From NCBI GenBank assembly GCA_951406725.2, contig OX597827.1:72106001-72170000 (forward strand): a DNA stretch of 64,000 nt. Direction: 5' to 3'. Both the position numbers and the translations under genes were made by a program. Source of the stretch: Octopus vulgaris (Eukaryota). Below are positions 3,319 through 58,014 of the stretch, piece by piece. Numbering within the stretch: position 1 is the first letter of the stretch; every line of letters starts with the position of its first letter. The notes beneath the pieces were generated by a model, which was given only the letters and a program-made list of their open reading frames with translations, was not told the origin of the DNA and ran no database searches.

Positions 3319-5238
3319 TATAGCGCTGAAAAATAAAAACTTTCCTAATTTCAATTAGTTTTTAAAATATTTAATATCGTCATCTACGTAATAAAAAATG
3401 TCATCCACCGTCTCGCTTGATAAAGCAGATGTTACTCGGTTTCGAACGTGGCCTGTAAGCATTCGACTGAAGTCTGATGTCCTGATAAATCCACTAGATT
3501 AATATGGCTTAGGACTGCCTTCAAAATATTTGGCGGATGCGGATGAAATGTACATCCACTGAAAAAAAAGTACCAGCGTATATCAGCTAACATACCCAAA
3601 TGATCTCTCTGGTAATTATTGGTGACAGATAGGTAAAACAAAAGAAAGCATTCGGCAGATTTAAGTGCAGGGCTAAACCCCTGCAGTGAGTTTGAACTAA
3701 AAAAACTTCTGAGCTTGTAATCTATCCAATACCATTATTATACTAAGACATCACACACCCAATGCACAATGTACGTGTGTCTACAAAAAAACATATAGTC
3801 TTTAATAAAAGAATTATGATTTTAAAACAATGTCTGACTGAAGATATGTACATATCCCCATAATAAACTTAACGATTGACGCGGACAGTTTTCAAATACG
3901 ATCAGTGTCGACAGGGAATGGAACTCGGAACGACTGTTTGGAAGGCAACCACAGGAGAAGTTTCTGTGCGGACGCTCGAACTGCTAGAAATACCAGCGAA
4001 ATCTCCACCAAACAAATCACGCTTACTGTTTTGCACCGGGTAAGAAGACGATGGATAATGTTGTCCTATAAATCCTTAATAGGAAAGCATAGCCATGACT
4101 GGAATAATTTTGTTCATGGGTTTGCTCGATTGGGGTTGAACTAGAGCTAAATAAGAGCAAAAACAACGATTTGATGGCAACCCTTTTCAGTGCGTGGGTG
4201 AAAAGGGAGAAAGAGGTGTGTTTATAGTCCTTAACTTTTAATGTATAATATTTATTAATTGCAACACGTATCATAAACAGGTAATAGCGGAACACAAACC
4301 ACGTCTATAAACAGAAAAGGAATCTATGAAACACACCAATAAAGATATTATTTCTTCAAGGCCAATGGCTTTTGTACATTTCTCTCCCTATTCCTTATAA
4401 TTCTTCATCCTTTCACGAAGGTTATGTTTGCTTATATTCAGTAATCACCAGAAGCCATAAGTTTTAATTAATGATGACAAACAAATCAAATTTAAATTCA
4501 GGCTAAAAAAAAAAATGATTTCGGTTTAATGTTTCTTGTACAGGCCTATATTTACACACACACACACATGTTTATGTAATTTAAACTGATCACAAGGATT
4601 TGTACTTCATAATACGGTTGTTCTTCTCATACACAAAAAGAATCAGATGAACAATAATAATAATAATAATAATGCGCTTAACTTTATATTCCTAGATAAA
4701 TTACTATGTCTTTAAAAATGAGATAAAAATAGATTTGGGTTCGTCAATCGAATCAAAATGAATGTTTGATGAAATCATTCATTACTAAGCTCTGATGTTT
4801 ATAACAGCAATGTCATAGTTTCATAAAGGAAATTATTTTCCATCTTCTGACTCACTTCGGCAACGGTCACTCTTACTCATATTCCATTTTAATAAATGTA
4901 ATAAATGACAGATTGCAATTATAATGGGTCGTCTATTATTTTAATTGCGTAAACTGAAGAAGATAATTATAATAAATTAATACATGCTAAGGGTCGTCTC
5001 ATTTTTTTTTTCTTTCCTTTTCTTTAGTTCGTCTCCTAATTTAATTTTAAAAAGGCTCGAATTCTAAGCCTGATTTAGGTTCCGAACAAGCTCGACTTCA
5101 TCGAATCGTGCCTGCATTTTAAAATATAAAATTAAATAATTCTATATCTCTTCTAACCAGGCTGTAAATAGAAGGTTTTTAAGTTAAAGGCAGTAAACAT
5201 CAAAACAATGAACAGAACGATGAAATCCAAGCGCAAAC

Positions 5239-5404
5239 CATTATACTGCAGGCCTAACAGCTTCTGTCTGTGAGGAAGAACTCCGGTCAAGTTCTGTATT
5301 TTGGACTTTAGATCAGCGACAGTGTTCGAACTCGTCAGATCGGTCAGTTTATACTCGTTTCCACTCCAGCGGACAGTCATTTCTACTGGGGTGTCTGCTG
5401 CCAT
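5239..5404 (-). CDS. UBLCP1: UBLCP1 coding exon 1 (ubiquitin-like domain-containing CTD phosphatase 1)
   Basis: MAADTPVEMTVRWSGNEYKLTDLTSSNTVADLKSKIQNLTGVLPHRQKLLGLQYN(G) carries the UBLCP1-type UBL signature TGVLPxRQKLLGL. Phase-1 GT donor at 5238-5237. Confidence 0.92.
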
Positions 5405-5469
5405 CCTTGCAGACAAGACGGAACCGTTGACAATTCTCGACGTTGTTATTATTGATGAACAAAACACGA

Positions 5470-9715: not shown

Positions 9716-10330
9716 TCAATCTTGAAGCACCTCAGAGTAAACAATATTCATCGTGTAATTTTTTATTGGTGTCCGAATGAATAAATTGTTGCTGCTTCCA
9801 AGTTGTGAGGAAGCAACATAGAGTCGGCTGTGGGAGAAGAATGTAGTAGTGAGATGAAGTCCAACAACTTTGAGGGACTGACACTGAGATTTATTAATTG
9901 AAGTACCAAAACTCAGTTTGACTGGAAACTGAAGTGTCTTAAATTCAACTGGAACTTGAGACACTTCTGTAGGTATGAGAGAAAATTTTGAAATAAAGAC
10001 ATTTTCTTCTTTGTGACTACTTGTAACGATTGTTGCCTGTAAGACATGGGACTTCATGGAAGTGACAATTAAAGGAGTTCCATTACATAGGCAAGGTGGA
10101 TCAAGATTCCTAAGCAACATAATGGGAGCATCCGGCTTTAGTGTCAAGTCATGTGGTAGAAATTAAACAGCCTGACCTTGATCGACTGTTGTGTGAATTG
10201 ATGGAAAAGTCATTTCTGATGTATCTGTTAACTTTTGGGGAAGTTCGTGATTGAGTTTCTCAACCATTTCATTAGTTGGAGCCAGTATAGCTCTTTCTCA
10301 TAGCCAGTTTACATCAGTGAAATTGACAAT
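9716..10330 (-). mobile_element. Helitron RepHel (PIF1 helicase) C-terminal fragment, degenerate
   Basis: ORF LKPDAPIMLLRNLDPPCLCNGT...QFPVKLSFGTSINKSQCQSLKVVGL...SHSRLYVASS matches PIF1 motifs. Upstream on the same strand is ERAILAPTNEMVEKLN, with stop codons. Confidence 0.85.
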
Positions 10331-16707: not shown

Positions 16708-17787
16708 CCTTCAATCCTGCCCTTATTCTTCTCAAGATTTCTGTATCCACGTCTTGATAATGGTAAGATGGTGGAATAAAATGATTTGGGCCATAAAAGA
16801 ATGGCTTAATCAAGAAAGAATTGCAGCACTATGTGACCAATAGTGTGTGGCAACATCTGATTGTCTGGCTGGGCAGGTAATACAAGAAATGTATACATGG
16901 CGTAGGAGTGGCTGTGTGGTAAGTAGCTTGCTTATGAACCACATGGTGCCAGGTTCAGTCCCACCACGTGGCATCTTGGGCAAGTGTCTTCTACTATAGC
17001 TTCGGGCCAACCAAAGCCTTGTGAGTGAATTTGGTAGACAGAAACTGAAAGAAGCGCGTTTGTAGAGGCGCAATGGCCTAGTGGTTAGGGCAGCGGACTC
17101 GCGGTTTCGATTCTCAGACCGGGCGTTGTGTGTGTTTATTGAGCGAAAACACCTAAAAGCTCTACGAGGCTCCGGCAGGGGGTGGTGATCCCTGCTGTAC
17201 TCTTTCACCACAATGGCGGTGCCCCAGCATGGCCACAGCTCAAGAGCTGAAACTGGAAAAACAAAAACAAAAACAAATATATATAAATATATACATATAT
17301 ATATGCATGTGTGTGTGTTTGTTCCCCAACATTGCTTAACAACCGATGCTGGTGTGTTTACGTCCCTGTAATTTAGCGGTTCGGCAAAAGAGACCGATAG
17401 AATAAGCACTAGGCTTACAAAAAATAAATCCTAGGGTCGATTTGGTTGACTAAAGGCGGTGCTCCAGCATGGCCACAGCCAAATGACTGAAACAAGTAAA
17501 AGAGTAAAAAGAACATGTGTTGTGTGTTTGTGCCTCCTTGTCTTGACATCAGGTGACAGATGTCAATGAGTTTCATGCTCACACAAGAGGTGTTGCTCAT
17601 TTCCAATCTTCTGTGGAAATATACCTGGTCATGGGAAAATATTACCTTGCCTGGAAATAGGTGAGGGTTGGCAACAGGAAAGGGATCCGGTCGTAGAAAA
17701 TCTGTCTCAATAAATTCCGTCTGTGTGATGCAAGCATGGAAAAGAGACCGCTAAAATGATGACCATGAAGCACAAGATTATATAATG

Positions 17788-17856
<69 letters not shown>

Positions 17857-18060
17857 AAATAGAAAGATGAATAATCTTGTAGTAGATTAATCAAAAGTTT
17901 AACCGATACCTTAGTAGCAAAAATCACAGCAGTAAAACAGCACGGTTGGAGGTACAACCATATGGTGTTGCAACCGTGTGTTGGTGCGGATAATTGAAAT
18001 TAGAACATTATTGGTGAATTGAAGAAATGGAGCTGAACGCAGATTGAACAGAAATCGTTT

Positions 18061-18155
18061 TATTTCATTCTACACGTGTTTCGAAAGGCACAAATTACCA
18101 AAATCCGATGGAATAATGGGACCATATTGTGTCTTTCTCTTCAGGAAGAAAATAG
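18061..18155 (-). ncRNA. Mirror-image type I hammerhead ribozyme motif
   Basis: Reverse complement of the 18195-18289 motif within the palindrome; predicted cut between 18071 and 18070. Confidence 0.7.
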
Positions 18156-18194
18156 GAAATCTGTTGGAAAAACATTGTTTTTCCAATGGATTTC

Positions 18195-18289
18195 CTATTT
18201 TCTTCCTGAAGAGAAAGACACAATATGGTCCCATTATTCCATCGGATTTTGGTAATTTGTGCCTTTCGAAACACGTGTAGAATGAAATA
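18195..18289 (+). ncRNA. Type I hammerhead ribozyme motif (long stem II, palindromic stem III)
   Basis: CTGAAGA at 18206-18212; stem II GAAAGACACAA/TTGTGCCTTTC; GAAA at 18268-18271; C-ACGT-G, then TA, with predicted cut after 18279. Stem I (TTTCTTC / GAATGAAA) is imperfect. Confidence 0.7.
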
Positions 18290-18547
18290 AAACGATTTCT
18301 GTTCAATCTGCGTTCAGCTCCATTTCTTCAATTCACCAATAATGTTATATATATATATATATATATATATAAGTAGTTGAATGAATTATCCTATTATGGA
18401 TAATTCGGTTAACCGATACCCGGGTAGCAAATTTACGTCAGAAAGCACGGTTGAAGCTACATGCCAAGGGCAGAAATCACATTATCACTATGGACTCCGT
18501 GTGGGCAGTCATCTAAAAGTTTTTGTTCGTCATGATGCTGACATGAG

Positions 18548-18646
18548 TTCCTTGTCTTTCCTGAGGAGAAGACGGCATAATGCACCCTTTATTCCTTCGG
18601 AATTAAGAATATGCAGTCTTCGAAACATGTGTCGAGAATAAAGGAA
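18548..18646 (+). ncRNA. Type I hammerhead ribozyme motif, family 2
   Basis: CTGAGGA at 18561-18567; stem II GAAGAC-GGCATA/TATGCA-GTCTTC; GAAA at 18622-18625; C-ATGT-G-TC with predicted cut after 18633. Stem I TTCCTT..TTTC / GAGA..AAGGAA. Confidence 0.7.
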
Positions 18647-18675
18647 TTTTGTTAAATCCTCGTTCGACTCCATTC

Positions 18676-18727
<52 letters not shown>

Positions 18728-19589: not shown

Positions 19590-19658
<69 letters not shown>

Positions 19659-20180
19659 GGTAAGGAGAGTGAGAAAGGAGAGACAATCAATGATAGCAAG
19701 AAATGAAAAGAGGGAGAGAGGAAGAAAGAGAAAACGAAGAGAGATAGAAGAAAAAGCAAGAGTGAGAGAGGGAGGGTGGAAAGAGAGATAGGGAGAAGGG
19801 AAGAGAGAAGTAAATAGAGAAAAAGATAGAACAAGAGAAGACGAGAGGGGTAAGGAGAAAAAAGAGAAAGACGAAGAGAGAAGCGAGGAATAGAGAAAGG
19901 GAAAGAGAGGAGAAGAGAAAGAGAGAGGAGAAGAGAAAGAGAGAGGAGGAGAAGAGAAAGAGAGAGGAGAAGAGAAAGAGAGAGGAGAAGAGAAAGAGAG
20001 AGGAGAAGAGAAAGAGAGAGGAGCAGAGAAAGAGAGAGGAGAAGAGAAAGAGAGAGGAGGAGAAGAGAAAGAGAGAGGAGGAGAAGAGAAAGAGAGAGGA
20101 GGAGAAGAGAGAGAGAGAGAGAGGAGGAGAAGAGAAAGAGAGAGGAGAAGAGAAAGAGAGTGGAGGAGAAGAGAACGAAT

Positions 20181-20218
<38 letters not shown>

Positions 20219-20550
20219 GAGAAGAGAAAGAGAGTGGAGGAGAAGAGAACGAATGAGAAAGAGAGAGGAGGAGAAGAGAAAGAGAGAGGAGAAGAGAGAG
20301 AGAGAGAAAGGAGGAGAAGAGAGAGAGAGAAGAGAAGAGAAAGAGAGAGGAGGAGAAGAGAGAGGAGGAAAAGAGAGAGGAGGAGAAGAGAGAGGAGGAA
20401 AAGAGAAAGAGAGTGGAGGAGAAGAGAACGAATGAGAAAGAGAGAGGAGGAGAAGAGAAAGAGAGAGGAGGAGAAGAGAAAGAGAGTGGAGGAGAAGAGA
20501 ACGAATGAGAAAGAGAGAGGAGAAGAGAGAGAGAAAGGGGAGCGAAGAAC
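19050..20550 (+). repeat. ~1.5-kb GA-rich polypurine tract with nested GA minisatellites
   Basis: Units such as GAGAGAGATGGTGGGAGAAA (about 19120-19320) and GAGGAGAAGAGAAAGAGA (about 19900-20530); one interrupting (TA)n(GA)n run near 19590-19650. Confidence 0.9.
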
Positions 20551-23120: not shown

Positions 23121-23308
23121 ACATACAAATTAAGGACTGAACACGTAAAGTGGACAGTCAACATGCTAGATATAGACGTCAAATCGCCATTCTCCACAAA
23201 GAGTATGTGCTGAGTTTTATTTGAGAACATACTCTTTGGGGAGAATGGCGATTTGACGTCTATATCTAGCATGTTGACTGTCCACTTTTCGTGTTCAGTC
23301 CATAATTT

Positions 23309-23314
<6 letters not shown>
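23121..23314. repeat. Fold-back element, 88-bp arms with an 18-nt loop
   Basis: Arms 23121-23208 and 23227-23314 are reverse complements with a few mismatches; (TA)n lies nearby on both sides. Confidence 0.85.
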
Positions 23315-28432: not shown

Positions 28433-29010
28433 GGGCGGCGAGCTGGCAGAAACGTTAGCGCGCCAGGCGAAATGCTTAGCGGTATTTCGTCTGTCGCTAC
28501 GTTCTGAGTTCAAATTCTGCCAAGGTCGACTTTGCCTTTCATCTTTTGGGGTCGATTAAATAAGTACCAGTTACGCACTGGGGTCGATATAATCGACTTA
28601 ATCTGTCTGTCCTTCTTTGTCCTCTCTGTGTTTAGCCCCTTGTGGGTAGTAAAGAAATATGTATTTCATCTGCCATACGTTCTGAGGTCAACTTTACCTT
28701 TCATCCTTTCGGGGTCGATAAATTAAGTACCAGTTATGCACTGGGGTCGATGTAATCGACTTAATCCCTTTGTCTGTCCTTCTTTGTCCTCTCTGTGTTT
28801 AGCCCCTTGTGGGTAGTAAAGAAATAGGTATTTCGTCTGCCATTACGTTCTGAGTTCAAATTCCGCTGCGGTCAACTTTGCCTTTCATCCTTTTGGGGTC
28901 GATAAATTAAGTACCAGTTACGCAATGGGGTTGATGTAATCAACTTAATCCCTTTGTCTGTCCTTGTTTGTTCACTCTGTGTTTAGCTCCTTGTGGGCAA
29001 TAAAGAAATA
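28433..29010 (+). mobile_element. Tandem trimer of SINE family B
   Basis: One full head followed by two 5'-truncated repeats of core plus tail. Confidence 0.85.
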
Positions 29011-29703
29011 TATATATATATAATAGCTTGTGGTGTGTGTTCTGACACTGTGCTGTGAGTTTAAGTTCTGCTAAAGACAATATTAGCTTTCATCCGTTCA
29101 GGATTGTTAAAAAGGAATATGTACTAATCCCGTGTATGGGAATGTTAGTGTCAGATTGGTTGCCTTTCACTGTTTATTTTGGCTCTTTAAATGCCAGTAT
29201 GGTCTAGCTGGGTATTAGACTTTCACCTTGAGTACCTTTAGCAGAGTTGACTCTAGTGGAAACATTTGGGTCAAGTATCTTAAGTTCAGGATACCTTCTT
29301 CCCTCCCTCACACCAGTGTGGGAGGCTCTGTAAAAGTTCCTCACCTGGATCTCTCTTTCTCTGTGTGTGTGTGTACATATACATACTAACACGCACACAC
29401 ACACACACATATTGTGGAGGCGCAATGGCCCAGTGGTTAGGGCAGCGAACTCATAGTTGTAAGATCTATTCCCAGATCGGGCATTGTGAGTGTTTATTGA
29501 GTGAAAACACCTAAAAGCTCCACGAGGCTCTGGCAGGGGGGTGGTGATCCCTGGTGTACTCTTTTGTCACAACTTTCTCTCACTCTGTCTTCTGTTGGCC
29601 TGCTTGCTTAGTCAGCGGGTTGGCGTCATTTGAAGGCTAAAACAATGCGAAGCGCATTGTGACCTGTGATGTGTAGCAACATCTAATAGCCTGGTTGGTC
29701 ACG

Positions 29704-33150: not shown

Positions 33151-33228
<78 letters not shown>

Positions 33229-33404
33229 TACGACAGGCTTCTTTCAGTTTCCGTCTACTAAATCCACTCACAAGGCATTGGTCGGCCCGGGGCTATAGCA
33301 GAAGACACTTGCCCAAGATGCCACGCTATGGGACTGAACTCGGAACCATGTGGTTGGTTAGCAAGCTACTTACCACACAGCCACTCCTGCGCCTATAAAT
33401 AGTC

Positions 33405-34060
33405 TTTTTTAATCATTTCACCACTGGAGAAGATTTGAAGGAGTCCTTTCTGCAATATGGACACATATTTATCTGAGTTTATGTTTCCCTCACACTCCAC
33501 CAGCTCTGATCAACCATTGCTCCAAATTGTTCCCCAGACCATCACAGAATAGCTACTGTTTCATTGTTGGTTGCAATCTTTTCACATCAAATTCTTGATC
33601 ACAGAGTCTCCAGAGCCATACTCAACCTTTGTTAAGAAATACAGCAATCTGGACTCATCAGAGAATATGACAACATCCCAAAATGCTAGTGGCCTCTCCC
33701 CCATCTCACTGGCCCAATCTTTTCTCCACTTGGTTGGCTGGTCGGAGGAGTGGCTTTCTGCTTGCTGCTTTGCCATAGTAACCAAGTTTGTGGAGATACC
33801 TGACAGCTACTCTGGGACTGACATCAACTTGTTTTGCTATGTCCGAGGCCTTGCAATGAGGATTGTCTTCCAAACTTCTCTTAGCAAAGAGAAGGGTTCT
33901 ATGAGAGGGCCTTAGTTGATCTGGGTGAGGTGATTTGGACTCCTTCCCCTCTCTGGTGAATTGCACAATCACTCTATTAACCGTAGAAAGCAGGATCTCA
34001 AGGTTTTCAGTGATTTTACTCTATGTCCACCTTCAGAATGACCCACAATACGGATAGAAC
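33405..34060 (-). mobile_element. Decayed Tc1-like transposase fragment
   Basis: ASDIAKQVDVSPRVAVRYLHKLGYYGKAASRKPLL and WASEM...FWDVVIFSDESR (Tc1 HTH and the first catalytic D); frameshifted. Confidence 0.8.
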
Positions 34061-34334: not shown

Positions 34335-34420
34335 ATGGCAACAATTGAAAAACTTGTAAGATCCTTTGAGGCCCTGAAGGTTTTCCAGCCTGTAGGGGGC
34401 AGTGCTGAAGAACCTACCAA
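34335..34420 (+). CDS. HTT: Huntingtin coding exon 1 (N17 domain, single Q)
   Basis: MATIEKLVRSFEALKVFQPVGGSAEEPT(K), compared with human MATLEKLMKAFESLKSFQ. AG acceptor at 34329-34330, GTAAGT donor at 34421. Confidence 0.95.
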
Positions 34421-35798: not shown

Positions 35799-36030
35799 TA
35801 CATATATACGATGGGCTTCTTTGAGTTTCCGTCTACCAAATCCACTTACAAGGCTTTGGTCAGCCCAAGGCTATAGTAGAAGACACTTGCCCAAGATGCT
35901 ACGCAGTGGGACTGAACCTGGAACCATGTGGTTGGTAATCAAGCTACTTACCACATAGCCACTCCTAAAATGCAGTCATAATAATCATTTGTTTGTAAAT
36001 TATTATTATTTTTTTCTTCTTTTGCTTCAG

Positions 36031-36114
36031 GAAAAAGGAACCCCTTCCAAGTAAAAAAGACAAAATGATCAATTGTAATGTGATGGCGGATTGTATCTGC
36101 GCACCAAATATGCG
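36031..36114 (+). CDS. HTT: Huntingtin coding exon 2
   Basis: KKEPLPSKKDKMINCNVMADCICAPNM(R), similar to human [28 protein letters not shown]. 84 nt, AG/GT. Confidence 0.92.
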
Positions 36115-38890
36115 GTAAGTACATTAAGTTTGTTGTTGCTTTGTCTCAGGTTTTAATATTTCCCTTTTCTGTGAAACTGTAAGAAATGATTTGAGTGAGA
36201 TTTGGCTGATGTTTCTAACAGGATTGAACCACCTCTTAGAGACCCCCCCTTATTGGCTTGTTGCAGCTGTTGTTATAATTGAAGGCCAGCAGGAGAAGCT
36301 GGAATGATACAGCAATGAGCAAAGTACCTCACAGTGTTTAGTTTCTGCTTTCTACATTCTGAACTGAAAAACTTACTGTGGTAGGACTTGATCCTTTATT
36401 CCTCTCAGTGGCTGGGTCTGTCTATGAAATAAATATCAGTTATATATAGTGGAGTAGGATCATGGTGTAGTACTTATGGTGTTGCAGTCATGAGTGTAAG
36501 ATCATGGTTTCAATTCCTGAGCCAGGCAATGTATTGTGTTCTTGTGCAAAACATTTCATTTCCAAGTCACTCCAGTCCACTCAGCTGTAGAGTCATGTGG
36601 CTTACTGGTTAGGGTGTTGCACTCATGATCATAAGATTGTGGTTTCGATCCCTGGACTGGAGAATGCGCTGAGTCCTTGAGCAAAATTCATGTTGCTCCA
36701 GTCCACTCAGCTGACAAAATGAGTAATCCTGCAATGGCCCAGTGACCCATCCAGTGGGGGAATATATACACCACAGAAAGCAGGGAACCCTATGGATCTG
36801 TATGACTTGGGGAAGGAGCTAAATGAGTTCCAGCAATAATGAGGGAGTTAACCCTATTGTTTATCTTTTTACTTGTTTCAGTTCTTATATTGTGGCCATG
36901 CTGGGGCATCACCACTAAAGAACTTTTAGTTGAACAAATCAACCCCAGTACTTATTTTTCCTTAACCTGGGTGTTTCTTCTATTGACCTCTTTTTCTTGA
37001 ACTGCTAAGATATGGGGACACAAACACACCAACACCGGTTGTCAAGTGGTGCTGGGGGACAAACAAAGACAGACACAAAGACACACACATACATGTATAT
37101 CTTGGGCTTCTTTTGGTTTCCGCCTACCAAATCCACTCACAAAGCTTTGGTCATTCCGAGGCTGTAGTAAAAGCCACTTGCCCAAGGTGTCACTCAGTGG
37201 AACTGAACCTGGAACCATGTGATTGAGAAACAAGCTTCTTCCCATACAAAAAATTAAATGCGCCCTTTTAAAGCCTAGCCAGGCTCATGGGCTCAGTTTC
37301 CTGGTTTCTATGGCGTATGTGTTCCCCAGCTGGATGGGACGCCAGTCCATCGCAGCGTTACTCTTTTTTGCCAACTGAGTGGACTGGAGCAACGTGAAAT
37401 AAAGTGTTTTGCTCAAGAACACAACGCGTCGCCCGATCCAGGAATCGAAACCACAATCTTGCGATCATGGTACTGACACCCTAATCACTAAGCCATGCAC
37501 CTCCACTCTTCCCATACAACCACACCGTATTTTTTTCTTTTTGTTTTTTTTTTTCTGTCTATGGCAGCATTGTTCACTGTATTCTTTCCTTGCTGCTATA
37601 TGTAACAGGCTGAGTAGCCTTGTGGGAGATTCCCCTCAATGGCTATTGTCTGTTCAGTTAATTTCTGTTGCCATAATTCCTTATCAGTTCCATTTTCTGT
37701 TTCACATTCTCTCTGTAAATCAACAATCTTTTCATTGTCAGACTTAGTAATTCTTACTGAATACCTCCACACATTTACAACTGGTAAACTTTGGTTTATC
37801 TCTCATCTTTTACTTGTTTCAGTCGTTTGACAGTGGCCATGCTGGAGCATCAACTTTTTACTCTTTCACTTGTTTCAGTCATTTGACTGCGGTCATGCTG
37901 GAGCACCACCTTTAGTCGAGCAAATCGACTCCAGGACTTATTCTTTGTAAGCCTAGTACTTAATCTATCGGTCTCTTTTGCCGAACTGCTAAGTTACAGG
38001 GATGTAAACACACGAGCATCGGTTGTCATATATACGACGAGCTTCTTTCAGTTTCTGTCTACCAAATCCACTCACAAGGCTTTGGTTGGTCCGAGGCTAT
38101 AGTAGAAGACACTTGCCCAGTGTGCCATGCAGTGGGATCGAGCCCGGAACCATGTGGTTGGTAAGCATCCTACTTACCAGCCTGGTGCTTATTTTATTGG
38201 CCTCTTTTGCCAAACCACTTACCATATTTTAATGTGTATAGGGAACCCTTTTTTGTCAAAAATTAGGTTTAAAAAATATGGGAGTTTTTTTTATATGGAT
38301 AGTATTATAATCTCTTACAAAACCTTTTTTCCAAATTTTAATCCCCAAACATTAGGGGGTTCCTTATACACATTAAAATACGGTACTTACTGGGATATAA
38401 AGACACCAACACCAGTTGTCAAGCAGTGGAGTTGGGACAATCACTCACATACATGCACGCATGCACACACACATGCACGCATGCACACACACACACGATG
38501 GGCTTCTTTCAGTTTCCATCTACCAAATCCACTCGCAAGGCTTTGGTCAACTCAGAGATATAGTGGAAGACACTCACCCAAGGTGCCATGCAGTGGGACT
38601 GAACCCAGGACCATGTGGTCGGGAAGCCAGCTTCATACCACACTATCTCGGAAAACAAATTATCACAAGATGATGTTGAGATGGATAAGATTCTCTTTTC
38701 AGCATCTCATGATGCACGTCTAAAACTTTGGTCACATGATGTACAGACAGAGAACTGCTACATTCCTATCTCCCTCCTCCCCCTCTCTCTCTTACTGTCC
38801 TTCCTTCTTCCACCCCCCCTTGTTTCATCTTCTTTCTCTATTCATGCTTCTCTCTCTGTCTGTCTCTGCCTGTCTGTCTCTCTCTCTCTT

Positions 38891-39278: not shown

Positions 39279-39890
39279 TAAATAGCAGCTGATATACTCA
39301 TTATGTACATGTATTCTGTCAAATAGCATCTGATATACTGCTCAGTTGTATATGTGTTCTGTCAAATAGCAGCTGATATACTGCTCACTTGTATATGTGT
39401 TCTGTCAAATAGCATCTGATGTACTGCTCAATTGTATATGTGTTCTGTCAAATAGCAGCTATGTACTGCTCAATTGTATATGTGTTCTGTCAAATAGTAG
39501 CTGATGTACTGCTCAATTGTATATGTGTTCTGTCAAATAGCATCTGATGTACTGCTCAATTGTATATGTGTTCTGTCAAATAGCATCTGATATACTACTA
39601 AATTGTATATGTGTTCTGTCAAATAGCATTTGATATACTGCTCAGTTGTATATGTGTTCTGTCAAATAGCATCTGATATACTGCTCAATTTTATATGTGT
39701 TCTGTCAAATAGCAGCTGATATACTGCTCAATTGTATATGTGTTCTGTCAAATAGCATTTGATATACTGCGCAGTTGTATATGTGTTCTGTCAAATAGCA
39801 ACATATATAGTGCTGCATGCATTCTGTCAAATAGTAGCTAATATACTGGTCAGTTGTGTACATGATCTGTCAAATAGCAGCTGATATACT
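39279..39890. repeat. 43-bp minisatellite, about 14 copies
   Basis: CTGTCAAATAGCA(T/G)CTGAT(A/G)TACTGCTCAATTGTATATGTGTT; GTCAAATAG starts at 39318, 39361, 39404, 39447 and so on to 39869. Confidence 0.95.
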
Positions 39891-40464
39891 GGCTGTGTAC
39901 ATTGTACTTTGAAACAGTGGATTTCCACTGCTTTGATGAAGGGTCAGCGAGGTGCAGCTGCACAGTGTTATGAAAAAAGTGTGATGGTTTTGTGCTGATG
40001 TTTTTATTTGATGAACATTTTGCACAATGAATATCATTATAAGGAAATGTTTTGTGCTGAGCCAAAGAGCTAGTCCTACTCTCTCATCCTTCAGGTTTGT
40101 ATTGACCTGGTGCAAGAAGGGCCACAAATCTGGTAGTTATCTGGGGCACAGGATTTGTGTGAAGTTATGTTCTAAGGAGTTGAAGGGCCTCATTTTTCCC
40201 TGAGTTCATTGGTGTGTCTATAGGTGACCTTCTTCTAGAACTAAGTCTATGACATGCTAATTTACCCACAGCTGAGACTCTGACAGGTATCAGAGAAGAT
40301 GTACATTGGGAATACTGGTGACTAAGTGGTGATCCCGTACCCCTCAAATCTCTGGAACTCCCAAACCAAGGTCCCACTACCGATGTGGTTTAAAGTTATA
40401 CCTAGGACAAACATGCACTGCCAAATAACTAGTGTATTGGTACTTACTTGTATATGGTCAAAAG

Positions 40465-40770: not shown

Positions 40771-41664
40771 AATGGTCAGATAGAAGCACTTGTATATTAT
40801 ATGTAGTTTGGGCCCCAGTCAACTCTTGTCAAAAGATCTATGATCAAAGAGAGATCTGGGTTTTTGAGTAAGCTACAATGGTACTCAGTTTGGTGGAGCA
40901 GAAACTGTTGTAGTAGCAGTAGAGGAAACAGATATTGGACACAGCATGTCAGTTGGGCTAGATGTTCAATTGTAAGTGAGCCATGACCTAGCATTTATGG
41001 CCAGTTTTGTCACCATCTTGTCATATTTTTTTTCTCCCAATGTTATATATTTAACACTACATTATCCAATGTATCCATCCTTTCTAAGATGCTGGGGGGG
41101 GGGGGGGTGTATGATTCGAAGGATGTTTGGCTACTCTTTTTAGCTGAACAGTGAACAGGAGGAGTGGCTGTGTGGTAAGTAGCTTGCTTACTAAACACAT
41201 GGCTCCGGGTTCAGTCCCACTGCATGGCACTTTGGGCAAGTGTCTTCTACTATAGCCTCGGGCCGACCAAAGCCTTGTGAGTGGATTTGGTAGACAGAAA
41301 CTGAAAGAAGCCCGTCGTATATATATATATATATATGTGTGTGTGTATATTTTTCTGTGTCTGTATTTGTCCCCCCAACATCTCTTGACAACCGATGCTG
41401 GTGTGTTTGCTTCCCTGTAACTTAGCGGTTCGGCAAAAGACACTGATAGACTAAGTACTAGGCTTACAAAGAATTAAGCCCTGGGGTCGATTTGCTTGAC
41501 TAAAGGCGGTGCTCCAGCATGGCCACAGTCAAATGACTGAAACAAGTAAAAGAGTAAAGAGAGTGCAGAGGTCTCCTTGTTGGTTTATCTGTTGGATTGT
41601 AGTTGTTGAGTGTTGGTTCTTGAAGACTTGTTGGTCTTTATATCAATACAGCTAAGAATAGTTA

Positions 41665-41886
41665 GTGCGTAGTTGTAGTAGTAGTAGTTGTAATAGTAGT
41701 AGTTGTAATAGTAGTAGTAGTAGTAGTGGTAATAGTAGTGGTAGTAGTAGTGGTAGTGGTAATAGTAGTAGAGTAGTGGTAGTAGTGGCAGTGGTAGTAG
41801 TTGTAGTAGTAGTGGTAGTAATAGTAGTAGTAGTAGTAGTAGTAATGGTGGTATAGTAGTAGTTGTAGTAGTAGTGATGTTGGTAA

Positions 41887-41924
<38 letters not shown>

Positions 41925-42103
41925 ATGGTGGTATAGTAGTAGTAGTAGTGGGTAGTAGTGGCAGTGGTAGTAGTTGTAGTAGTAGTGGTAGTAGTAGTAG
42001 TAGTAGTAGTAGTGATAGTAGTGGCAGTGGTAGTAGTTGTAGTAGTAGTGATGTTGGTAGTAGTAGTAGTAGTAATGGTGGTATAGTAGTAGTAGTAATA
42101 GTC

Positions 42104-42138
<35 letters not shown>

Positions 42139-42240
42139 TGTGGTAATAGTAGTGGTGGTGGTGGTGGTAGTAGTAGTAGTAGTGGTGGTGGTAATAGTAG
42201 TAATAGTAGTAGTAGTAGTAGTAGTAGTAGTTGCAATAAC
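41665..42240. repeat. Long imperfect (TAG/GTA)n trinucleotide microsatellite
   Basis: About 575 bp of GTA repeats interrupted by GTG/ATA/TTG. Confidence 0.95.
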
Positions 42241-42923
42241 AACACTGACATTGAAACATTTCGTTGCAGTCAGAAACGTTCTTCGGTTTCATTATTATTT
42301 CTCATGAGGGTTATTTTATCCTTTTACTGCAGAAATCGGAGATATACTCTCAAATATTCAACATCCGCAACTGTAGAAAGCAGTTTTTATATACCAATCT
42401 ATTCTTTTGTCAAAGAATGTCATGTTAGAAACTATCCTCAGTTGAAATATGTCAAGTTTATTGGGGTAACGTGACTTGCAGAAAATACCAATTCAGTTTT
42501 TTTTTGGTAGATGTTTAACATTATTACAAGAATAAACATGAAACTTAATTTTTCAGTTGAAGGGTTAATGTCCATTTTTGCCTTGCTAGCATGTATTAGA
42601 TGAGGAATTATTTTATAGATTGATATATATATATATATATACTACAAAATTAGAGAATGGAGAAACATACTTAAATCAATAAAACATCAACTATCCGATT
42701 ATCTATAATTGAGTAGTTGAATGAATTATCTTATTATGGATAATTCGGTTAACCGATACCTCGGTAGCAAATTCACGTCAGAAAAACACGGTTGAAGCTA
42801 CATGCCTAGGGCAGAGATCACGTGCTATTGTGTGGAAATTTGTGTGTTTTTTTAAATACAAATAAATGAAAGAATGGAGTTGAACGAAGAAATTAGCAAA
42901 ATTCCTCTATATAAGTTCCTTGC

Positions 42924-43006
42924 TTTTCCTGATGAGAAGGCGGCATAATGCACCCCTTATTCCTTCGAAATTAGGAATATGCAGCCTTCGAAACATATGT
43001 CGAAAA
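42924..43006 (+). ncRNA. Type I hammerhead ribozyme motif, family 2, sense strand of HTT intron 2
   Basis: TTTTC-CTGATGA(42929-42935)-GAAGGC.GGCATA...TATGCA.GCCTTC-GAAA(42990-42993)-C-ATAT-G-TC|GAAAA, predicted cut after 43001. Enclosed by ~55-bp inverted arms 42856-42910 and 43011-43065. Confidence 0.8.
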
Positions 43007-43735
43007 TAAAATAGAGGAATTTTGTTAATTTAGTTGTTCAACTCCATTCTTTTATTTATTTGTATATATATATATATATATAATACTGCAGTAGAAAGTA
43101 GTGGCTGTGTGGTAAGTAGCTTGCTTACGAACCACATGGTTCCAGGTTCAGTCCCACTGGGTGGCACCTTGGGTAAGTGTTTCTACTATAGCCTCGGGGC
43201 GACCAAAGTGGATTTAGTAGACAGAAACTGAAAGAAGCCTGTCATATGTATGTATACGTATGTGTGTGTGTGTGTCTGTGTTTGTCCCCCCAACATTGCT
43301 TGACAACCGATGCTGGTGTGTTTACGTCCCCGTAACTTTAGTGGTTCGGTAAAAGAGACCGATAGAATAAGTACTAAGCTTACAAAGAATTAAGTCCTGG
43401 GGTTGATTTGCTCGACTAAAGGTGGTGCTCCAGCATGGCAGTTTATAAAATTATCTTACTCCTTTATTTGTTTCAGTCATTTGACTGTGGCCATGCTGGA
43501 GCACCACATTTAGTCAAGCAAATCGACCCCAGGGCTTAATTCTTTGTAAGCCTAATACTTATTCTATCGGTCTCTTTTACCGAACCACTAAGTTACGGGG
43601 ACGTAAACACACCAGCATCGGTTGTGTTAGTCTCGTTTGAAACTATTTTTCATTGAGATACATCAAGTTCATTCTGGTAGCTGGCTTGCAGAAAACGAAC
43701 CAATGGTAGATATTTAACATCATTACTGGAATAAC

Positions 43736-44311: not shown

Positions 44312-44446
44312 GATGGTTGCACCAGGCTCCAGTCTTGATCTGGCAGAGTTTCTACAGCTGGATACCCTTCCTAATGGTTGGCATTAGGAAGGGCATCCAG
44401 CTGTAGAAACTCTGCCAGATCAAGACTGGAGCCTGGTGCAGCCATC
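44312..44446. repeat. Hairpin from inverted duplication within an RTE-tail element (65-bp arms, 5-nt loop)
   Basis: 44312-44376 is the reverse complement of 44382-44446 with 2 differences. Confidence 0.9.
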
Positions 44447-44557
44447 TGGTTGCCAACCCATACTAGCCTGGAAAACGGACGTTAAATGATGATGATGATG
44501 ATGATGAAGAATTAAACTTGCTAACCTTGTTTTATTTTTTTCTTCTTCTCTCTGCAG

Positions 44558-44678
44558 ATCTATAGCAGATTTTCCTAAGTTCCTTGGAATAGCTATGGAA
44601 ACATTTCTAATGCTCTGTGATGATCCTGAAGCTGATATTCGCATGGTTGCTGATGAATGCCTCAATAAAACAATTAAG
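44558..44678 (+). CDS. HTT: Huntingtin coding exon 3
   Basis: [40 protein letters not shown] (human: [33 protein letters not shown]). 121 nt, AG/GT. Confidence 0.97.
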
Positions 44679-46671
44679 GTAAACATCCCCCAAAAATTTT
44701 ATTTGTTTATTTCATAGGAAGTGATCATCTACGTTTGAGAATTTCAAAGACAAATTGTTGTTCGTTAGAGCCAAGGCAGCATTAATGAGACAGACCTATA
44801 ATCAAAGGCATTCCAGACTTGATCAAGTCTTTTTTTTTTTTTTTTTTTTTTTTCCAGACATACTGTACCTAGAACTAAAATACTCCAACATGTTCTCTTT
44901 TCCCTTGTTAATTGAGCTCTGACTAATCATTATGCCAAAGTGAGAATCTGGACTCTGTGAATGGGCTGATGTGACCTTTGTGGAATTATTACAACCTGTT
45001 GGTGCAGGCTTGGCTGTGTGGTTAAGAAGCTTACTTTGCATTCCAAATGGCTCTGGGTTCAGTCCTGCTATGTGACACAGTGATAGGAAATTTCACTGTA
45101 AACATTTTTGTCTGCGGATAATTTACCATAAGAAATTTCATTTTAAATGACATCATCAAGTTTGTTTAACGTTTGACAATGAATAATACTTGTCTACTTA
45201 ATGCTTTTTATTCGGGTATTATTCAATGTCAAACATTAAAAAATAAACCTGAAAACTTGTCTATTTAATGCTTTTATGTGAAGGCGCATGGCTCAGTGGT
45301 TAGAGCATCAAGCTGATGATTATGAGTTTGTGAGTTCGATTCCTGGACCAGGCTGTGTGTTGTGTTCTTGAGCAAGATACTTTATTTCATTTCGTCCTAG
45401 TTCACTCAGTTGTAGAAATGAGTTGCAACATCACTGGTGCCAATCTGTATCAGCCTTTGCTTTCCCCTTGGATAACATCTGTGGCGTGGAGAGGATAGTC
45501 TGGTATGTATGGGCGACTGCTGGTCTTCCATAAACAACCTTGCTCAGACTTGTACCGAGGAGGGGAACTTTCTAGGTGCAATCTCATGGTCAGTCATGAC
45601 TGAATTGGGTCTTTACCCTTTAGTTAACAGTTCATTAAAATCTTTTATTATTCCTTTTTTTATTTTATTTCAAAAATGCTGACATAATACGGTTTATCAT
45701 TGTCCATATGGTAAATTCATCTCACAACAAATTTTCCTCGACAGAGCCTGGTGCAGCCTCCTGACTTGCCAGTCCTCAGTCAAACTGTCCAACCCATGCC
45801 AGTGTGGAAAGTGGACGTTAGACAATGATGATGGTGATGAGGATGAGTGACATTTCTTATGGCAAATTTTCTGGACATGACATGGCACCTTGGGCCGATG
45901 TCTTCCACTATAGCCCTAAGCCAACTGATGTCTTATGAGTAAACTTGGTAAATGGAAACTGTGTGGAAGCATGTTGTATATAAAATGTGTGTGTGTGTGT
46001 GTCTTTGTGCTTGTGTTTTCTCCTTCCTCCACAGCTGACGATTGGTGTGCGTTTGTTTACATTCCCGTAACTTCACAGTCCAGCAAAAGAAACAAATATA
46101 TTAAGTGCCAGACTTAAGTACTGGGGTCATTTTGTTTGACTAAACTCTTCAAGGATGTGTCCTTGCAAGGCCAAACTCTAATAACTGAAACAAGTAAAAG
46201 ATAAAAATAATAAAAAAAAAAAAAAGAGACTGATCTTAGGACTTCAATATTCCAATATGTCCTACTTTCCTGTGTTAACTGAGCTCCAAGCTAATCCTTA
46301 CCCTCATAGAAGTATTTAGATTCTCTAACCAGGTTGATGTGACCTTTGTGAAATTATCACAATATATCACTCTCTATCTTGCTGTCTTTTAGTCGCCTCT
46401 TACACCATGCAGGGAATATAGCGACTGAATTCTACTGACCACCCCATCCCAGTCGCAGGGGATTTTGCTAGTTAACGAATAGCTGGGACCCTTACAGATG
46501 CTACCGCTCTGGGCCAGAATAGACCTGGGAACAATAGTGGCTAAGAGGTGCTTCCACATTCCTCAAACCCTGAAACCAGGGCCCCAGGGTCCTACTACCA
46601 GATGTAGTTTATAGTCATAGCCAGGTCTTGTGGGTACCCGCTCCTAAAAAAAAAATGGGGAATAGGCCTGG

Positions 46672-50740: not shown

Positions 50741-51788
50741 ATACATGCATATATGGGTACAGGACATCAAAAAATGTAGACACAATGAGAAAACGAAAAC
50801 ATAAAAACAAAAACATAGAAAATGAACTTTTTTTCGAACAACAAAAAAACAAAAACAAATGGAGAAACGAGACATGTAACATAAAGAACATTCCCCTTCA
50901 TCAGTTGTTCCTGTTTCATCTTCTCCGCATTGTGAAGGTAAGGACAAAACGCGACTTTGTTGAAACAGTCCTTCCTGCAAGGCAAATTAAAAAAATTTGG
51001 GATTTTTTGCGGAGGGTGAATGTGGTAACAAAAACAGGACAGTGAGAACAAGACAGTAAAAACAGACGGTGAGGGCTGTTAAGCCAAGACGATGTGAAAA
51101 AATTATTATTATGAATGATAGAAAGACAAGCTATGAGAAGAGACAGGTGAAAGCATGTCTTGTCTTTACGAAGGAAGTGAAAGAAAGATCGCCTTTTGTA
51201 ACGTGTCAGCAACGAGAGTCTAGGAGGAAGAGTGAAAGAGACAGAAAACGGTGATGGTGAGAGGAGGAGAATAGGGAAAGGGAGGGACAGAAAGGAAGAG
51301 CAAGAGAAGGAGATAGATAGACAGAGAAGAGGTAGAAGAGATACGGTTTGTTTCTACAACGATACATTAAGGACCCTTATTTATGAGAACTACTGGATCA
51401 CTTGAATCCATATACCGTGACTTAAATATTTATAAGAGTGGAAGAGATAGAAGTAGATAGAAGAGTGTGCATTGTAATTATTAAGATAAAACTTACTTGG
51501 AAAAGGATGCGTGGTGTATATACATGACAGGGTTCTGTGTTTCAGTTTCTGTCTGCCAAGTCAACCAAATCCACTTACAAGGATTTGGTTGGCCCAAGAC
51601 TGTAGTAGAAAATACTTGCCCAAGGTGCCATGCATTCTATACGGTCTGTTTGTACAACGATACATTAAGGACCCTTATTTATGAGAACTACTGGATCACT
51701 TGAATCCATATACCGTGGCTTAAATATTTATAAGATATATACACCAACAAACAATTCTCATCTTGTTTTTCTGTTCCTTTCTTTCCAG

Positions 51789-51928
51789 ACTTTGTTAGAA
51801 ACAAACTTGGGCCGTTTACAGGTGGAACTGTACAAAGAGATCAAGAAAAATGGACCATCTCGAAGTCTTAGAGGAGCACTTTGGAGATTTGCAGATATGT
51901 GCCATTTGATACGTCCTCAGAAATGCAG
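51789..51928 (+). CDS. HTT: Huntingtin coding exon 4
   Basis: [46 protein letters not shown](R). 140 nt, AG/GT. Confidence 0.97.
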
Positions 51929-53193
51929 GTATGTTAATCTACAAATCCCAGGTAATTTGTACACAAAGTACTGTATATTGTAGTAATGTACTATACTTTA
52001 GAGATCCCCTATGTGATTGTTAACTTGCTAGAAATAGCAGATATATCTTCCTTACCCCTTTAGTGTTCAGATTACTCTGTGAAATGTAATCTTTATTTAT
52101 TCGTATTGTTTTGAATTAATCATGGATTATCTCACAGCTTTGAGATTTTGATAAAATTGGGAGGCAGAAACTGAAGAAATCAGTGTGTGAATGTGTGTGT
52201 GTTTTTTCGTGTGTTTATGTTATGTTTTTGTGTTTTGTTTGTTTATGTGTGTGTTTGTGTGTGCATGTGTGTGTGTGTGATTTTTGTGTATGTTTTTTGT
52301 ACATGCATATTTGTGTTTCTGTGTATGTGTGTTTGTGTGTGTGTATGTTCATTTTTAAAAAGACATTGCAGGTGAGGTGTGAGAAGTCGAATCTGGCTGA
52401 TTTGAACATAAAACAAGTAGAATATTCGGCCCAGATATGACTGGTTTAAATGCCAAATTGTGAAATGACGCCTTATTACTTTTAAAGATGGTTACCCAGC
52501 TGTATTTTAAGGCCCTCGTGCAATGTTGGTTTAAGGGTTACACATATTTTATTATTTTACTAGTTTCAGTCATTGGTCTGTGGCCATGCTGGAACACTGG
52601 TTTTAAGGGTTTTAATCAATTCTCTAGATCTCACTCTTAAGCCTAATATTTATGTTGTTGACCTTGCAGGGATGAAAAGCAAGTTGACCTGACCTCACTA
52701 TAAATAAAATGATTTGGAGAGTTCTGTATGCTGTAGGGTATCTTTGATGGACATACCAATTACTGTATTTTAACATGTATAAGGAACCCCCTAATTTTGG
52801 GGGCTTAAAATTTGGAAAAATTGTTTTGTAAGGGATTATAATACTTATTTCTTTATTACCCACAAGGGGCTAAACACAGAGGGGACAAACAAGGACAGAC
52901 ATAGGTATTAAGTCGATTACATCGACCCCAGTGCGTAACTGGTACTTAATTTATCGACCCCGAAAGGATGAAAGGCAAAGTCGACCTTGGCGGAATTTGA
53001 ACTCACAACGTAACGCAGACGAAATACTGCTAAGCATTTCGCCCGGCGTGCTAACGTTTCTGCCAGCTCATCGCCTTAAATTATAATAAGGGATTATAAT
53101 ACTATCCATGGATTAGAGACTCCCATATTTTTTTAACCTAAGTTTTGACAAAAAAGGGTTCCTTGTACATGTTAAATTACGGTATATCATATG

Positions 53194-53270
<77 letters not shown>

Positions 53271-54089
53271 CCTTATCTATCACTGTCTCTATTGTGCCCA
53301 AAGTTCACGAGCTGAGTTTTCTAAATCTGTGCATTAGCCAAGTTTAATTAAAATAATTTTAGCCATTTTGGATCGTATTGAGGTTTATTTGAAATTGCCA
53401 GTAACATGAACTGACTTTGCCATTCTTTCAAATATATATATATATATCATTCACTTTCTATACTGGCATGAATTTGACAGGGAACTGGCAAGAGTCAGGG
53501 CTTTGTCAAGCTCCAGTGTCATCCTTGGCATGGTTTCTATGGCTGGATGCCCTTCCTAATGCCAACCACTTTACAGAGTGGACTGCTGTGTGCTTTTTGT
53601 GCCACACCATTCATCATTGTTTCAATGTCCATTTTTTCCATGATTGTTGGATGGGTTGGACAGAGGTTATTGAGGCAGATTTTCTACAGCTGAATGTCTT
53701 TCCTATTGTAATATATATTTGATGTGCTTCCACAGTGTCTGTTTGCTGGATTTCACTTTGAAGGTTTTTGATCAGCCCAAGGCTGTAACAGAAGACACCT
53801 ACCCAAGTTGGTTACACATTGGCATCAAATCTGGATGGTCTGGCTTCAAAGCAGACTTCTTGACTGCACAGCTGTAGCTGTGTCCTTATAGCAAGAAGCT
53901 TGAAATTTCTTTTAATCTTCTATAAGTGGACGCAAGCTTGGCTGTGTGGTAAGAGGTTTGCTTTTCAACCTCATGGTTCCAGGTTCAGTTCCACCTCGTT
54001 GCACTTTGGGCAAGTGTCTTCTACTATAGCCATGGGCTGACCAAAGCCATGTGAGTGAATTTGGTAAACAAAAACTGAAAGAAGACTGT

Positions 54090-57920: not shown

Positions 57921-58014
<94 letters not shown>

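Follow-up and report, generated by a model that had tools for sequence, protein, structure and literature searches.

A 349-bp palindrome upstream of an octopus huntingtin homologue holds a hammerhead motif in each arm and is probably the doubled 3' module of a short retroposon

The palindrome and its repeat family

The subject of this analysis is a 349-bp AT-rich palindrome with a type I hammerhead ribozyme motif in each arm, which lies in a 64,000-nucleotide stretch of the Octopus vulgaris genome (assembly GCA_951406725.2, contig OX597827.1, positions 72,106,001 to 72,170,000; hereafter the window, from whose first base all positions are counted). The palindrome is part of one copy (A) of a family of short repeats with at least four loci in the window, the further copies (B, C and D) all lying on the + strand (Table 1). 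A huntingtin homologue occupies much of the remaining window: tblastn with a 2980-aa relative (P0023) placed ten exons on the + strand from 34335 (Met1) to 63171, and two open reading frames (ORFs) match Pfam Htt_N-HEAT_1 (E = 1e-20 and 9e-17). Copies A and B are found about 16 kb upstream of the start codon of this gene, while copy C lies in its intron 2 and copy D in its intron 8, both in the sense orientation.

An inverted-repeat search returned two palindrome arms of 174 nt each, 98% complementary and with 1 nt between them, and a base-by-base comparison located three mismatches (18003/18347, 18162/18188 and 18163/18187). Pairing is lost directly beyond both outer ends, each of which carries a TA (18001-02 and 18348-49). 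An earlier, sequence-only reading had set the limits at 18004-18346, with two mismatches and a 1-nt spacer, and within those limits the base-by-base comparison reproduces this count. Folded as single-stranded DNA, the palindrome reaches -206 kcal/mol against -34 +/- 4 kcal/mol for shuffles (z = -42); as RNA it reaches -298 kcal/mol for the + strand and -293 kcal/mol for the - strand. The + strand RNA hairpin is free of interruptions, both central mismatches turning into G-U pairs. On the + strand TG is found at both 18162-63 and 18187-88, 12-13 nt either side of the centre. Judging from the bases at these sites, the central mismatches are best explained by an ancestral CG in each arm, each struck once by CpG-to-TpG decay, which suggests that the palindrome is real DNA and old enough to have mutated. 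GC content is 32-36% around the palindrome and in the arms matched by covariance models.

The copies of the family are about 310-350 bp long, AT-rich, and devoid of ORFs beyond spurious ones of 86 aa or fewer; a 78-aa ORF across the palindrome and an 86-aa ORF in copy B yielded no homologues. Each copy is laid out as a head of about 100-140 nt, a variable spacer with a T5-T7 run, the hammerhead, and a 3' arm of about 45-65 nt. The conserved head motif, TTAACCGATACC..GTAGCAAA..CACGGTTGAAGCTACA, has three matches in the window, compared with 0.01 expected by chance, and copies B and C are colinear from AGTAGTTGAATGAATT (or AGTAGTTGAATG) through to CTCCATTCTTT. In copy A the order is head, inverted 174 nt, direct 174 nt, and both outer ends of the palindrome coincide exactly with the 3' terminus of the element. 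Since the head and the right arm of copy A are colinear with B and C, the palindrome is not the element itself but its 3' module doubled head-to-head. Copies B, C and D contain one hammerhead each and are without the long palindrome.

Inverted material is nevertheless found in and near copy C, whereas copy B has no inverted arm. Within copy C, inside 42845-42912, an internal arm repeats the final 52 nt of the copy in reverse-complementary form at 90% identity; the inverted-repeat search reported it as 42853-42917 paired with 43004-43068. This internal arm extends helix I of the copy C hammerhead to a stem of about 44 bp (fold z = -9.7). A further inverted 3'-terminal fragment precedes the head of copy C, with a shuffle p of about 0.002. 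A similar fragment upstream of the head of copy A looked plausible by eye and was dropped (p = 0.26-0.65).

Six termini adjoin (TA)n arrays, namely the 5' and 3' ends of copy A, both ends of copy B, the 3' end of copy C and the inverted fragment upstream of copy C, and arrays of at least 8 units make up 1.4% of the window. At least two further families of short repeats run straight into (TA)n or (GAT)n(TA)n, one of them finishing with ...GGTAGACAGAAACTGAAAGAAGCCTGTCG and another with ...CATGGAAAA..GACG.TAAATGATGATGA. Because (TA)n also terminates other short interspersed elements (SINEs) of the window, it is ambiguous between tail and target in the hammerhead-bearing element, and several retroposons of this genome may have it in common as one or the other. 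At 53380-53431, ...GACTTTGCCATTCTTTCAA stands directly before (TA)8 and resembles the 3' terminus of the element (CTCCATTCTTTC), the exact match being only 10 nt; this may be a severely 5'-truncated copy.

The head was also considered as a tRNA-derived, pol III-transcribed SINE head, and this candidate was rejected. ARAGORN found no tRNA, no tRNA-like match came from an Rfam search of copies A, B and C that allowed E values up to 10, and T-runs (T4-T7) lie between the head and the sense hammerhead (18058-18061 and 18178-18182 in copy A, 18520-18524 in B, 42847-42853 in C). A pol III transcript starting from the head would stop at these runs before reaching the ribozyme, whose transcription therefore probably depends on pol II or on read-through.

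Table 1. Positions of the palindrome, the hammerhead-bearing copies and other features of the window
Feature	Position	Strand	Remarks
(AT)32	17790-17853		adjoins copy A 5' end
Copy A, 5' head	17854-18000	+	homologous to B and C heads (TTAACCGATACC..GTAGCAAA ... CACGGTTG); outside palindrome
Copy A, left arm	18001-18174	-	inverted copy of the 174 nt of the right arm; hammerhead reads on - strand
Palindrome centre	18175		unpaired T
Copy A, right arm	18176-18349	+	direct 3' module: type I hammerhead and 3'-terminal arm reaching (AT)n
Copy A, hammerhead		+	CUGAAGA, CACGUG-UA; Hammerhead_1 14.8 bits
Helix I, 5' strand	18197-18205	+	pairs with 3' strand 18280-18288
CUGAAGA core	18206-18212	+
Helix II	18213-18267	+	55 nt
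GAAA core	18268-18271	+
Helix III, CACGUG	18272-18277	+
Predicted cut	after A18279	+	U18278 A18279 / G18280
Mirror hammerhead, left arm	CUGAAGA 18144-18138; GAAA 18082-18079	-	predicted cut between 18071 and 18070; position x becomes 36350-x
(AT)13	18346-18372		between copy A 3' end and copy B 5' end
Copy B	18373-18679	+	non-palindromic: head, spacer, hammerhead, 3' arm; then (AT)23 at 18680-18726
Copy B, hammerhead	CUGAGGA 18561-67; GAAA 18622-25	+	CAUGUG-UC; predicted cut after C18633; Hammerhead_1 20.4 bits
Inverted 3'-terminal fragment	42642-42712	-	between (TA)9 (42623-42641) and copy C head; aligned part about 42646-42685
Copy C	42713-43062	+	head, internal inverted arm, hammerhead, 3' arm; then (TA)10 at 43063-43082
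Copy C, hammerhead	CUGAUGA 42929-35; GAAA 42990-93	+	CAUAUG-UC; predicted cut after C43001; Hammerhead_1 25.5 bits
Copy D	about 59401-59498	+	decayed relic: CUGAUGA 59413-19, 12-bp helix II, GAAA 59477-80, CAUAUG
Palindrome	23121-23314		91-nt arms, 96%; beside (TA)n
Palindrome	43338-43591		102-nt arms, 94%; from common SINE-like repeat
Palindrome	44312-44446		65-nt arms, 97%, 5-nt spacer; inside unrelated SINE-like copy, direct arm runs to (GAT)n tail
Palindrome	59197-59324		(AT)n/(CAT)n, 19 nt unique flank each side; just upstream of copy D
Other repeats ending in (TA)n or (GAT)n(TA)n	2010-2069; 41258-41317; 33223-33282 (-); about 43100-43235; also 17730-17789, 57880-57933, 44447-44490
Huntingtin homologue, exons	34335-34418 (Met1), 36029-36115, 44556-44681, 51780-51941, 54376-54519	+
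Huntingtin homologue, exons (continued)	54999-55145, 56674-56958, 58059-58316, 60094-60894, 63028-63171	+

The hammerhead motif, its conservation and its predicted folding

Each arm of the palindrome was found to hold the complete element order of a type I hammerhead, as the sequence-only reading had claimed; the core is intact and the order of elements can be read on both strands. In copy A all fixed core positions are canonical, the G10.1-C11.1 pair is present, and H17 is A. The helix III region, ACACGTGT, equals its own reverse complement, and the earlier claim of a self-complementary stem III loop therefore stands: helix III is short and of the dimer-dependent class, comprising 2 bp closed by ACGU in the monomer, while in the dimer ACACGUGU gives an 8-bp intermolecular helix that was formed in RNAcofold. 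Among metazoan type I hammerheads, those whose helix III has 1-2 bp and whose loop is palindromic are poor self-cleavers as monomers and good ones as dimers, and such dimer-dependent hammerheads sit in retrozyme repeats and in the pseudo-long terminal repeats (pLTRs) of Penelope-like elements (PLEs) (PMC7229834, PMC4209133).

A custom hammerhead descriptor, which required the core, a helix II that begins with G-C and has 4 bp or more, a helix III complementary to itself, U-H, and no fewer than 6 of the 7 helix I pairs, matched exactly two sites in the 64 kb, these being the two arms, and none in 300 dinucleotide shuffles. At Rfam gathering thresholds no match was obtained anywhere in the window. 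When the isolated arm of copy A was searched, Hammerhead_1 (RF00163; gathering score 34 bits) aligned across the full 45 positions of the model, helix II carrying an insertion of 51 nt, and scored 14.8 bits (E = 0.54). A search with the Rfam hammerhead models, which the sequence-only reading had proposed as a check, is thus favourable as to the full-length alignment and unfavourable as to the score. The alignments of copies B and C are likewise full length, the helix II insertion measuring 50-51 nt across the three copies, and copy C reaches E = 1e-4 on a 108-nt stretch. The low scores are attributable to the length of helix II, which is 55 nt. Copies A, B and C hence share with the type I hammerhead (RF00163) the core and the three helices, with an open helix I and covariation, and differ from it in missing the curated score; cleavage by these copies is a prediction of the structural model.

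Copies B and C are 70-71% identical to the module of copy A and 75% identical to each other (BLAST, nhmmer). In the alignment of the three, every fixed core position is unchanged and G10.1-C11.1 is always present. The sole varying core position is N7, which is A in copy A, G in copy B and U in copy C, and N7 is the hammerhead core position known to be free. Among the helix cells of this alignment 86.9% are paired, compared with 34-49% when the partners are slid by 1-3 columns, and the observed fraction was reached in none of 500 shuffles. Six pairs have changed on both sides, four of them in helix II, one in helix I and one in the intermolecular helix III, where the central pair is C:G, U:G and U:A in the copies and self-complementarity is kept. 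This pattern is as would be expected under selection for a hammerhead, with the modest support that three distinct sequences can give. Conservation of the core across copies, the lack of which had been named by the sequence-only reading as grounds for dismissing the motif, is therefore seen within the window. Taken at the level of sequence, the intact core, its recurrence in diverged copies and the compensatory helix changes confirm that the hammerhead motif is genuine. Copy D is a relic hammerhead, as U16.1 has been replaced by C and G10.1 pairs with U.

A covariance model (R1) built from the four copies finds only five motifs, at four loci, in the window. The same model together with nhmmer found no copy in about 116 kb of non-redundant octopod DNA, which was drawn from the surroundings of Pif1-like genes at six loci in O. 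sinensis, O. bimaculoides and one ENA assembly. Neither the head motif nor the helix II block had an exact match when metagenome contigs were scanned for these patterns, and the Logan contigs around a huntingtin exon spanned only about 1.5 kb.

The sequence-only reading had further suggested that a transcript from either strand would carry one ribozyme and could also fold into a double-stranded RNA (dsRNA) of about 170 bp. A core is indeed encoded on each strand and the hairpin is predicted, but the two folds are mutually exclusive and are not combined in one RNA: enforcing the hammerhead helices in palindrome RNA with both arms costs +142 kcal/mol relative to the 174-bp hairpin. Elsewhere the hammerhead fold costs +6.8 kcal/mol when the right arm stands by itself, +3.7 kcal/mol in copy B and +6.6 kcal/mol in copy C. 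As the antisense arm is made first on either strand, the hairpin should win kinetically as well. According to these folding models, the palindromic copy most likely contains a catalytically masked ribozyme. An RNA spanning both arms would zip into the 174-bp hairpin and sequester the ribozyme, and a free hammerhead would be expected only from a transcript starting at or past the palindrome centre. Because its helix III is weak, this hammerhead should even then depend on a partner, another hammerhead in the same orientation with which the active helix of the dimer can form. Copy B lies 354 nt downstream and could fill this role, with a predicted 8-bp intermolecular helix III with copy A that includes one G-U pair. 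Because the hairpin sequesters the ribozyme, we infer that the palindrome is a structural by-product that masks the ribozyme rather than a device for producing ribozymes on both strands. The long perfect hairpin RNA could, in addition, be a substrate for dsRNA pathways.

Origin of the palindrome

The explanation that we favour, and hold to be probable with considerable room for doubt, is that the palindrome came about when the 174-nt 3' module of copy A was duplicated head-to-head as an inverted repeat; copy A itself would belong to a short, non-coding and non-autonomous retroposon family of the Penelope-like or animal-retrozyme kind. The inverted arm would have arisen during or soon after retrotransposition, with snap-back self-priming, a template switch of the cDNA and priming on both cleaved target strands as the candidate routes, all of them put forward for the inverted pLTR structures of PLEs. 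The cDNA of the 3' module may have been copied back on itself, or a template switch may have been seeded by a pre-existing inverted arm of the kind seen in copy C; the single base at the centre would mark the junction. In the sequence-only reading the locus was taken for a ribozyme-bearing non-autonomous retroelement. The analysis agrees in so far as a non-coding element of Penelope-like or retrozyme kind is concerned, although the palindrome is not itself the element, since copies B, C and D lack it.

Several published features of PLEs bear on this explanation. An inverted pLTR next to a direct one, with a palindrome at the junction, is a described hallmark of these elements (PMC8557442, PMC3846280), and palindromes at inverted junctions have been interpreted as the result of self-priming (PMC3846280). 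At their 5' end PLE insertions frequently bear an inverted copy that is 5'-truncated, they favour (TA)n, and their pLTRs carry hammerheads (PMC8557442). Purified PLE protein cleaves and extends both target strands, with hammerhead cleavage being dispensable in vitro (PMC11167929). The octopus locus resembles PLEs (Arkhipova et al. 2013, PMC3846280; Craig et al. 2021, PMC8557442; Cervera and de la Pena 2014, PMC4209133) in its head-to-head inverted and direct copies with a palindromic junction, in having in each repeat a type I hammerhead with a short palindromic helix III and one motif per strand, in its association with (TA)n, and in the 5'-truncated inverted fragment at the 5' side of copy C. 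It differs from them in that no reverse transcriptase (RT) or GIY-YIG ORF is found between or near the repeats, Pfam scans of the 58 ORFs of at least 75 aa in the window having returned neither domain, and in that the octopus unit is about 340 bp long with a separate 5' head. The minimal hammerheads of PLEs, moreover, have a helix II of 6-8 bp, whereas the octopus helix II is 55 nt long, with G10.1-C11.1 directly after A9 and no bulged base.

The likeness to animal non-LTR retrozymes (Cervera and de la Pena 2020, PMC7229834; Li, Clavereau and Pollet 2026), which are derived from PLE pLTRs (bioRxiv 10.64898/2026.07.22.740005), is similarly partial. The family is non-coding and low in GC, its unit falls within the 170-400 nt range (the predicted cut sites of A and B being 354 nt apart), its type I hammerhead has a weak helix III that implies dimeric action, and the RNA is predicted to be strongly self-paired, as in copy C. 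There is, however, no homogeneous tandem array: A and B are adjacent and co-oriented but only about 71% identical, with (AT)13 between them, and C and D are solitary. The octopus helix II is also long, and contacts between loop 1 and loop 2 cannot be recognised. In vertebrates, introns are reported to be depleted of retrozymes, whereas octopus copies C and D are intronic and in sense orientation. The retrozyme reading offered earlier is accordingly upheld in size, composition, self-pairing and weak helix III, and is doubtful where a tandem array is concerned.

More distant parallels exist. The Sm-alpha-type SINE-like repeats of Schistosoma and newt satellite 2 are reportedly hammerhead-bearing, with a weak helix III, and active as dimers. 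The octopus element would share with them the form of a short interspersed non-coding repeat of about 330 bp with a type I hammerhead, but its head has no detected similarity to a tRNA or a pol III promoter, and T-runs of at least 5 precede the hammerhead. In the Avsunviroidae, the hammerhead sequences of plus and minus polarity face each other in the "hammerhead arm" of the native fold. The octopus palindrome resembles this arrangement in that a hammerhead is paired to its own complement, is predicted to be inactive at rest, and is encoded in both polarities; it differs in being a DNA palindrome in an animal genome, with two identical ribozyme copies, known from sequence alone.

Several observations weigh against the retroposon explanation or parts of it. 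The Rfam scores of A, B and C (14.8-25.5 bits) all lie under the curated threshold, and helix II as modelled would be much longer than in the hammerheads tested experimentally, its loop-loop contacts not being assessable. The window contains no apparent autonomous partner, the proposed link to Penelope being drawn from anatomy and literature only. The head lies to the left of the inverted arm, where simple two-strand priming would place the target (TA)n, and an extra template switch or a DNA-level event is therefore needed. The inverted arm of copy C is not at the fold-back point, and one mechanism may not fit both A and C. The (TA)n arrays are ambiguous, as they could be a 3' tail common to other SINEs and not a target. 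Copies are few, with four loci in the window and none in the other octopod DNA searched.

The position of the head would be accounted for by an origin at the DNA level, which we regard as unlikely but deserving of attention. The short inverted repeat of a C-type copy would have been extended by replication template switching or break repair, the centre base being an end-joining junction. Copy C does show the short inverted-repeat state that would serve as the precursor, other palindromes of unrelated repeats are found in the window, and the one at 59197-59324 takes in 19 nt of non-repeat flank on each side, as a DNA-level duplication would. The outer 65 nt of the arms of copy A are, however, as identical as the inner part, while the old arms of copy C are only 86-90% identical, which means that a C-type precursor would have had to be very young, and nothing observed directly distinguishes this route from a template switch of the cDNA. 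We think it improbable that the palindrome is instead a functional unit, transcribed from one or both strands into self-cleaving RNAs and/or a hairpin RNA that feeds small-RNA or ADAR pathways regulating the family, a view that comes near to the sequence-only reading. The core encoded on each strand and the uninterrupted + strand hairpin would suit such a role, and small-RNA profiles switch polarity at inverted PLE structures (Arkhipova et al., PMC3846280). The energetic exclusion of one fold by the other speaks against it, as do the restriction of the long palindrome to one of the four loci and the resemblance of the arm mismatches to neutral CpG decay. Generic microRNA (miRNA)-precursor models do score on the hairpin and crowd the results of an Rfam search of the whole locus by E-value, all of them far below their thresholds, as is expected of any long hairpin; these matches were for this reason rejected as evidence for a miRNA or hairpin-RNA gene (MIR5048, MIR8562 and similar models score 41-94 bits against gathering scores of 83-211).

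Near-perfect palindromes with tiny spacers are a known failure mode of assembly, inverted PLE structures are known to trouble assemblies (PMC8557442), and long (AT)n flanks the locus; a chimeric fold-back, or a path through the assembly graph that turned back along its own reverse complement, could have produced the palindrome from a genome with a single arm. We give such an artefact little credence. The arms end at the 3' terminus of the element, their flanks differ (they are preceded by the head of copy A and followed by (AT)n and copy B), and of the three positions at which the arms differ two fit independent CpG-to-TpG decay, one per arm. The palindrome is also internal to the window, and smaller architectures of the same type occur in copy C and in other repeats. 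Harder still to credit is a miniature inverted-repeat transposable element (MITE) or foldback DNA transposon, bounded by long terminal inverted repeats and a duplicated TA target, in which the hammerhead-like sequence is incidental. The AT-rich palindrome with TA at both outer ends is what such an element would look like, and a weak Tc3-type transposase helix-turn-helix (HTH) ORF lies at 33709-33972. Yet the right-end TA is part of (AT)n and thus uninformative, no second copy of the palindrome as a unit is present in the window, and the colinearity of the right arm and upstream head with B and C, which have no long inverted arm, implies that the mobile unit was the head plus module and not the palindrome. 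Equally far-fetched, to our mind, is a palindromic unit that is itself the propagating form, as a near-self-complementary RNA with a hammerhead in either polarity and an inactive, rod-like resting fold as in avsunviroids. If circularised, both polarities could self-process in a symmetric rolling circle, or the hairpin could be a dedicated source of dsRNA controlling the family.

Genomic setting and significance

Four other short-spacer palindromes, all of unrelated repeats, were found in the 64 kb, and the hammerhead palindrome is the longest and most perfect among the short-spacer palindromes of the window. The one at 44312-44446 looks like a fold-back at a 5' truncation point, to judge from its course within the SINE-like copy, which suggests that the process behind the hammerhead palindrome acts on other repeats as well. 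The hammerhead palindrome is one instance of a phenomenon general to this genome.

That animal repeats carry hammerheads, that these depend on dimers, and that inverted structures of the PLE type exist was already known, and the present finding leaves the knowledge of hammerhead and retroelement biology unchanged. A literature search returned no report of hammerhead elements, or of this arrangement, in octopus, and the statement of the sequence-only reading that it knew of no such description is to this extent borne out. The arrangement is nonetheless not new in kind, given the inverted pLTRs of PLEs and the paired hammerheads on opposite strands, 100-700 bp apart, in Schistosoma (PMC4209133), and the giant squid genome paper lists 235 Hammerhead_1 matches. 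Our analysis adds to the short animal retroposons that bear hammerheads a cephalopod family whose helix II is unusually long. It also provides a very clean inverted-plus-direct architecture, so far known mainly from PLEs, with a junction resolved to a single base. This junction, together with the shorter version in copy C and the nearby fold-backs, could help to test self-priming, two-strand priming and template switching at the DNA level. The palindrome is, in addition, a likely fragile and hard-to-assemble site upstream of the huntingtin homologue, and copy C places an apparently intact hammerhead, in sense orientation, within an intron of that gene.

Other features of the window were noted in passing. 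An ORF at 9716-10147 (- strand) matches the Pif1 2B domain (E = 5e-8), its only named relatives being uncharacterised or PIF1-like proteins of Octopus sinensis and O. bimaculoides at 51-72% identity, and is probably a Helitron-derived fragment, as its domain content suggests. On the same strand, an ORF at 5156-5467 contains a ubiquitin-family domain (E = 5e-7, above the Pfam cut-off), and the HTH match of the ORF at 33709-33972 has an E of 3.5e-4, below the cut-off. Tandem and simple repeats are found at 39280-39891, 41669-42231, 19617-20534, 28522-29015 and 61737-62646. They comprise a 43-bp unit repeated 14.5 times, a (GTA)n with roughly 187 units, an AG-rich tract of 0.9 kb in which GC and AT skew are extreme, and SINE-like units arrayed in tandem or inverted fashion at periods of 184-235 bp.

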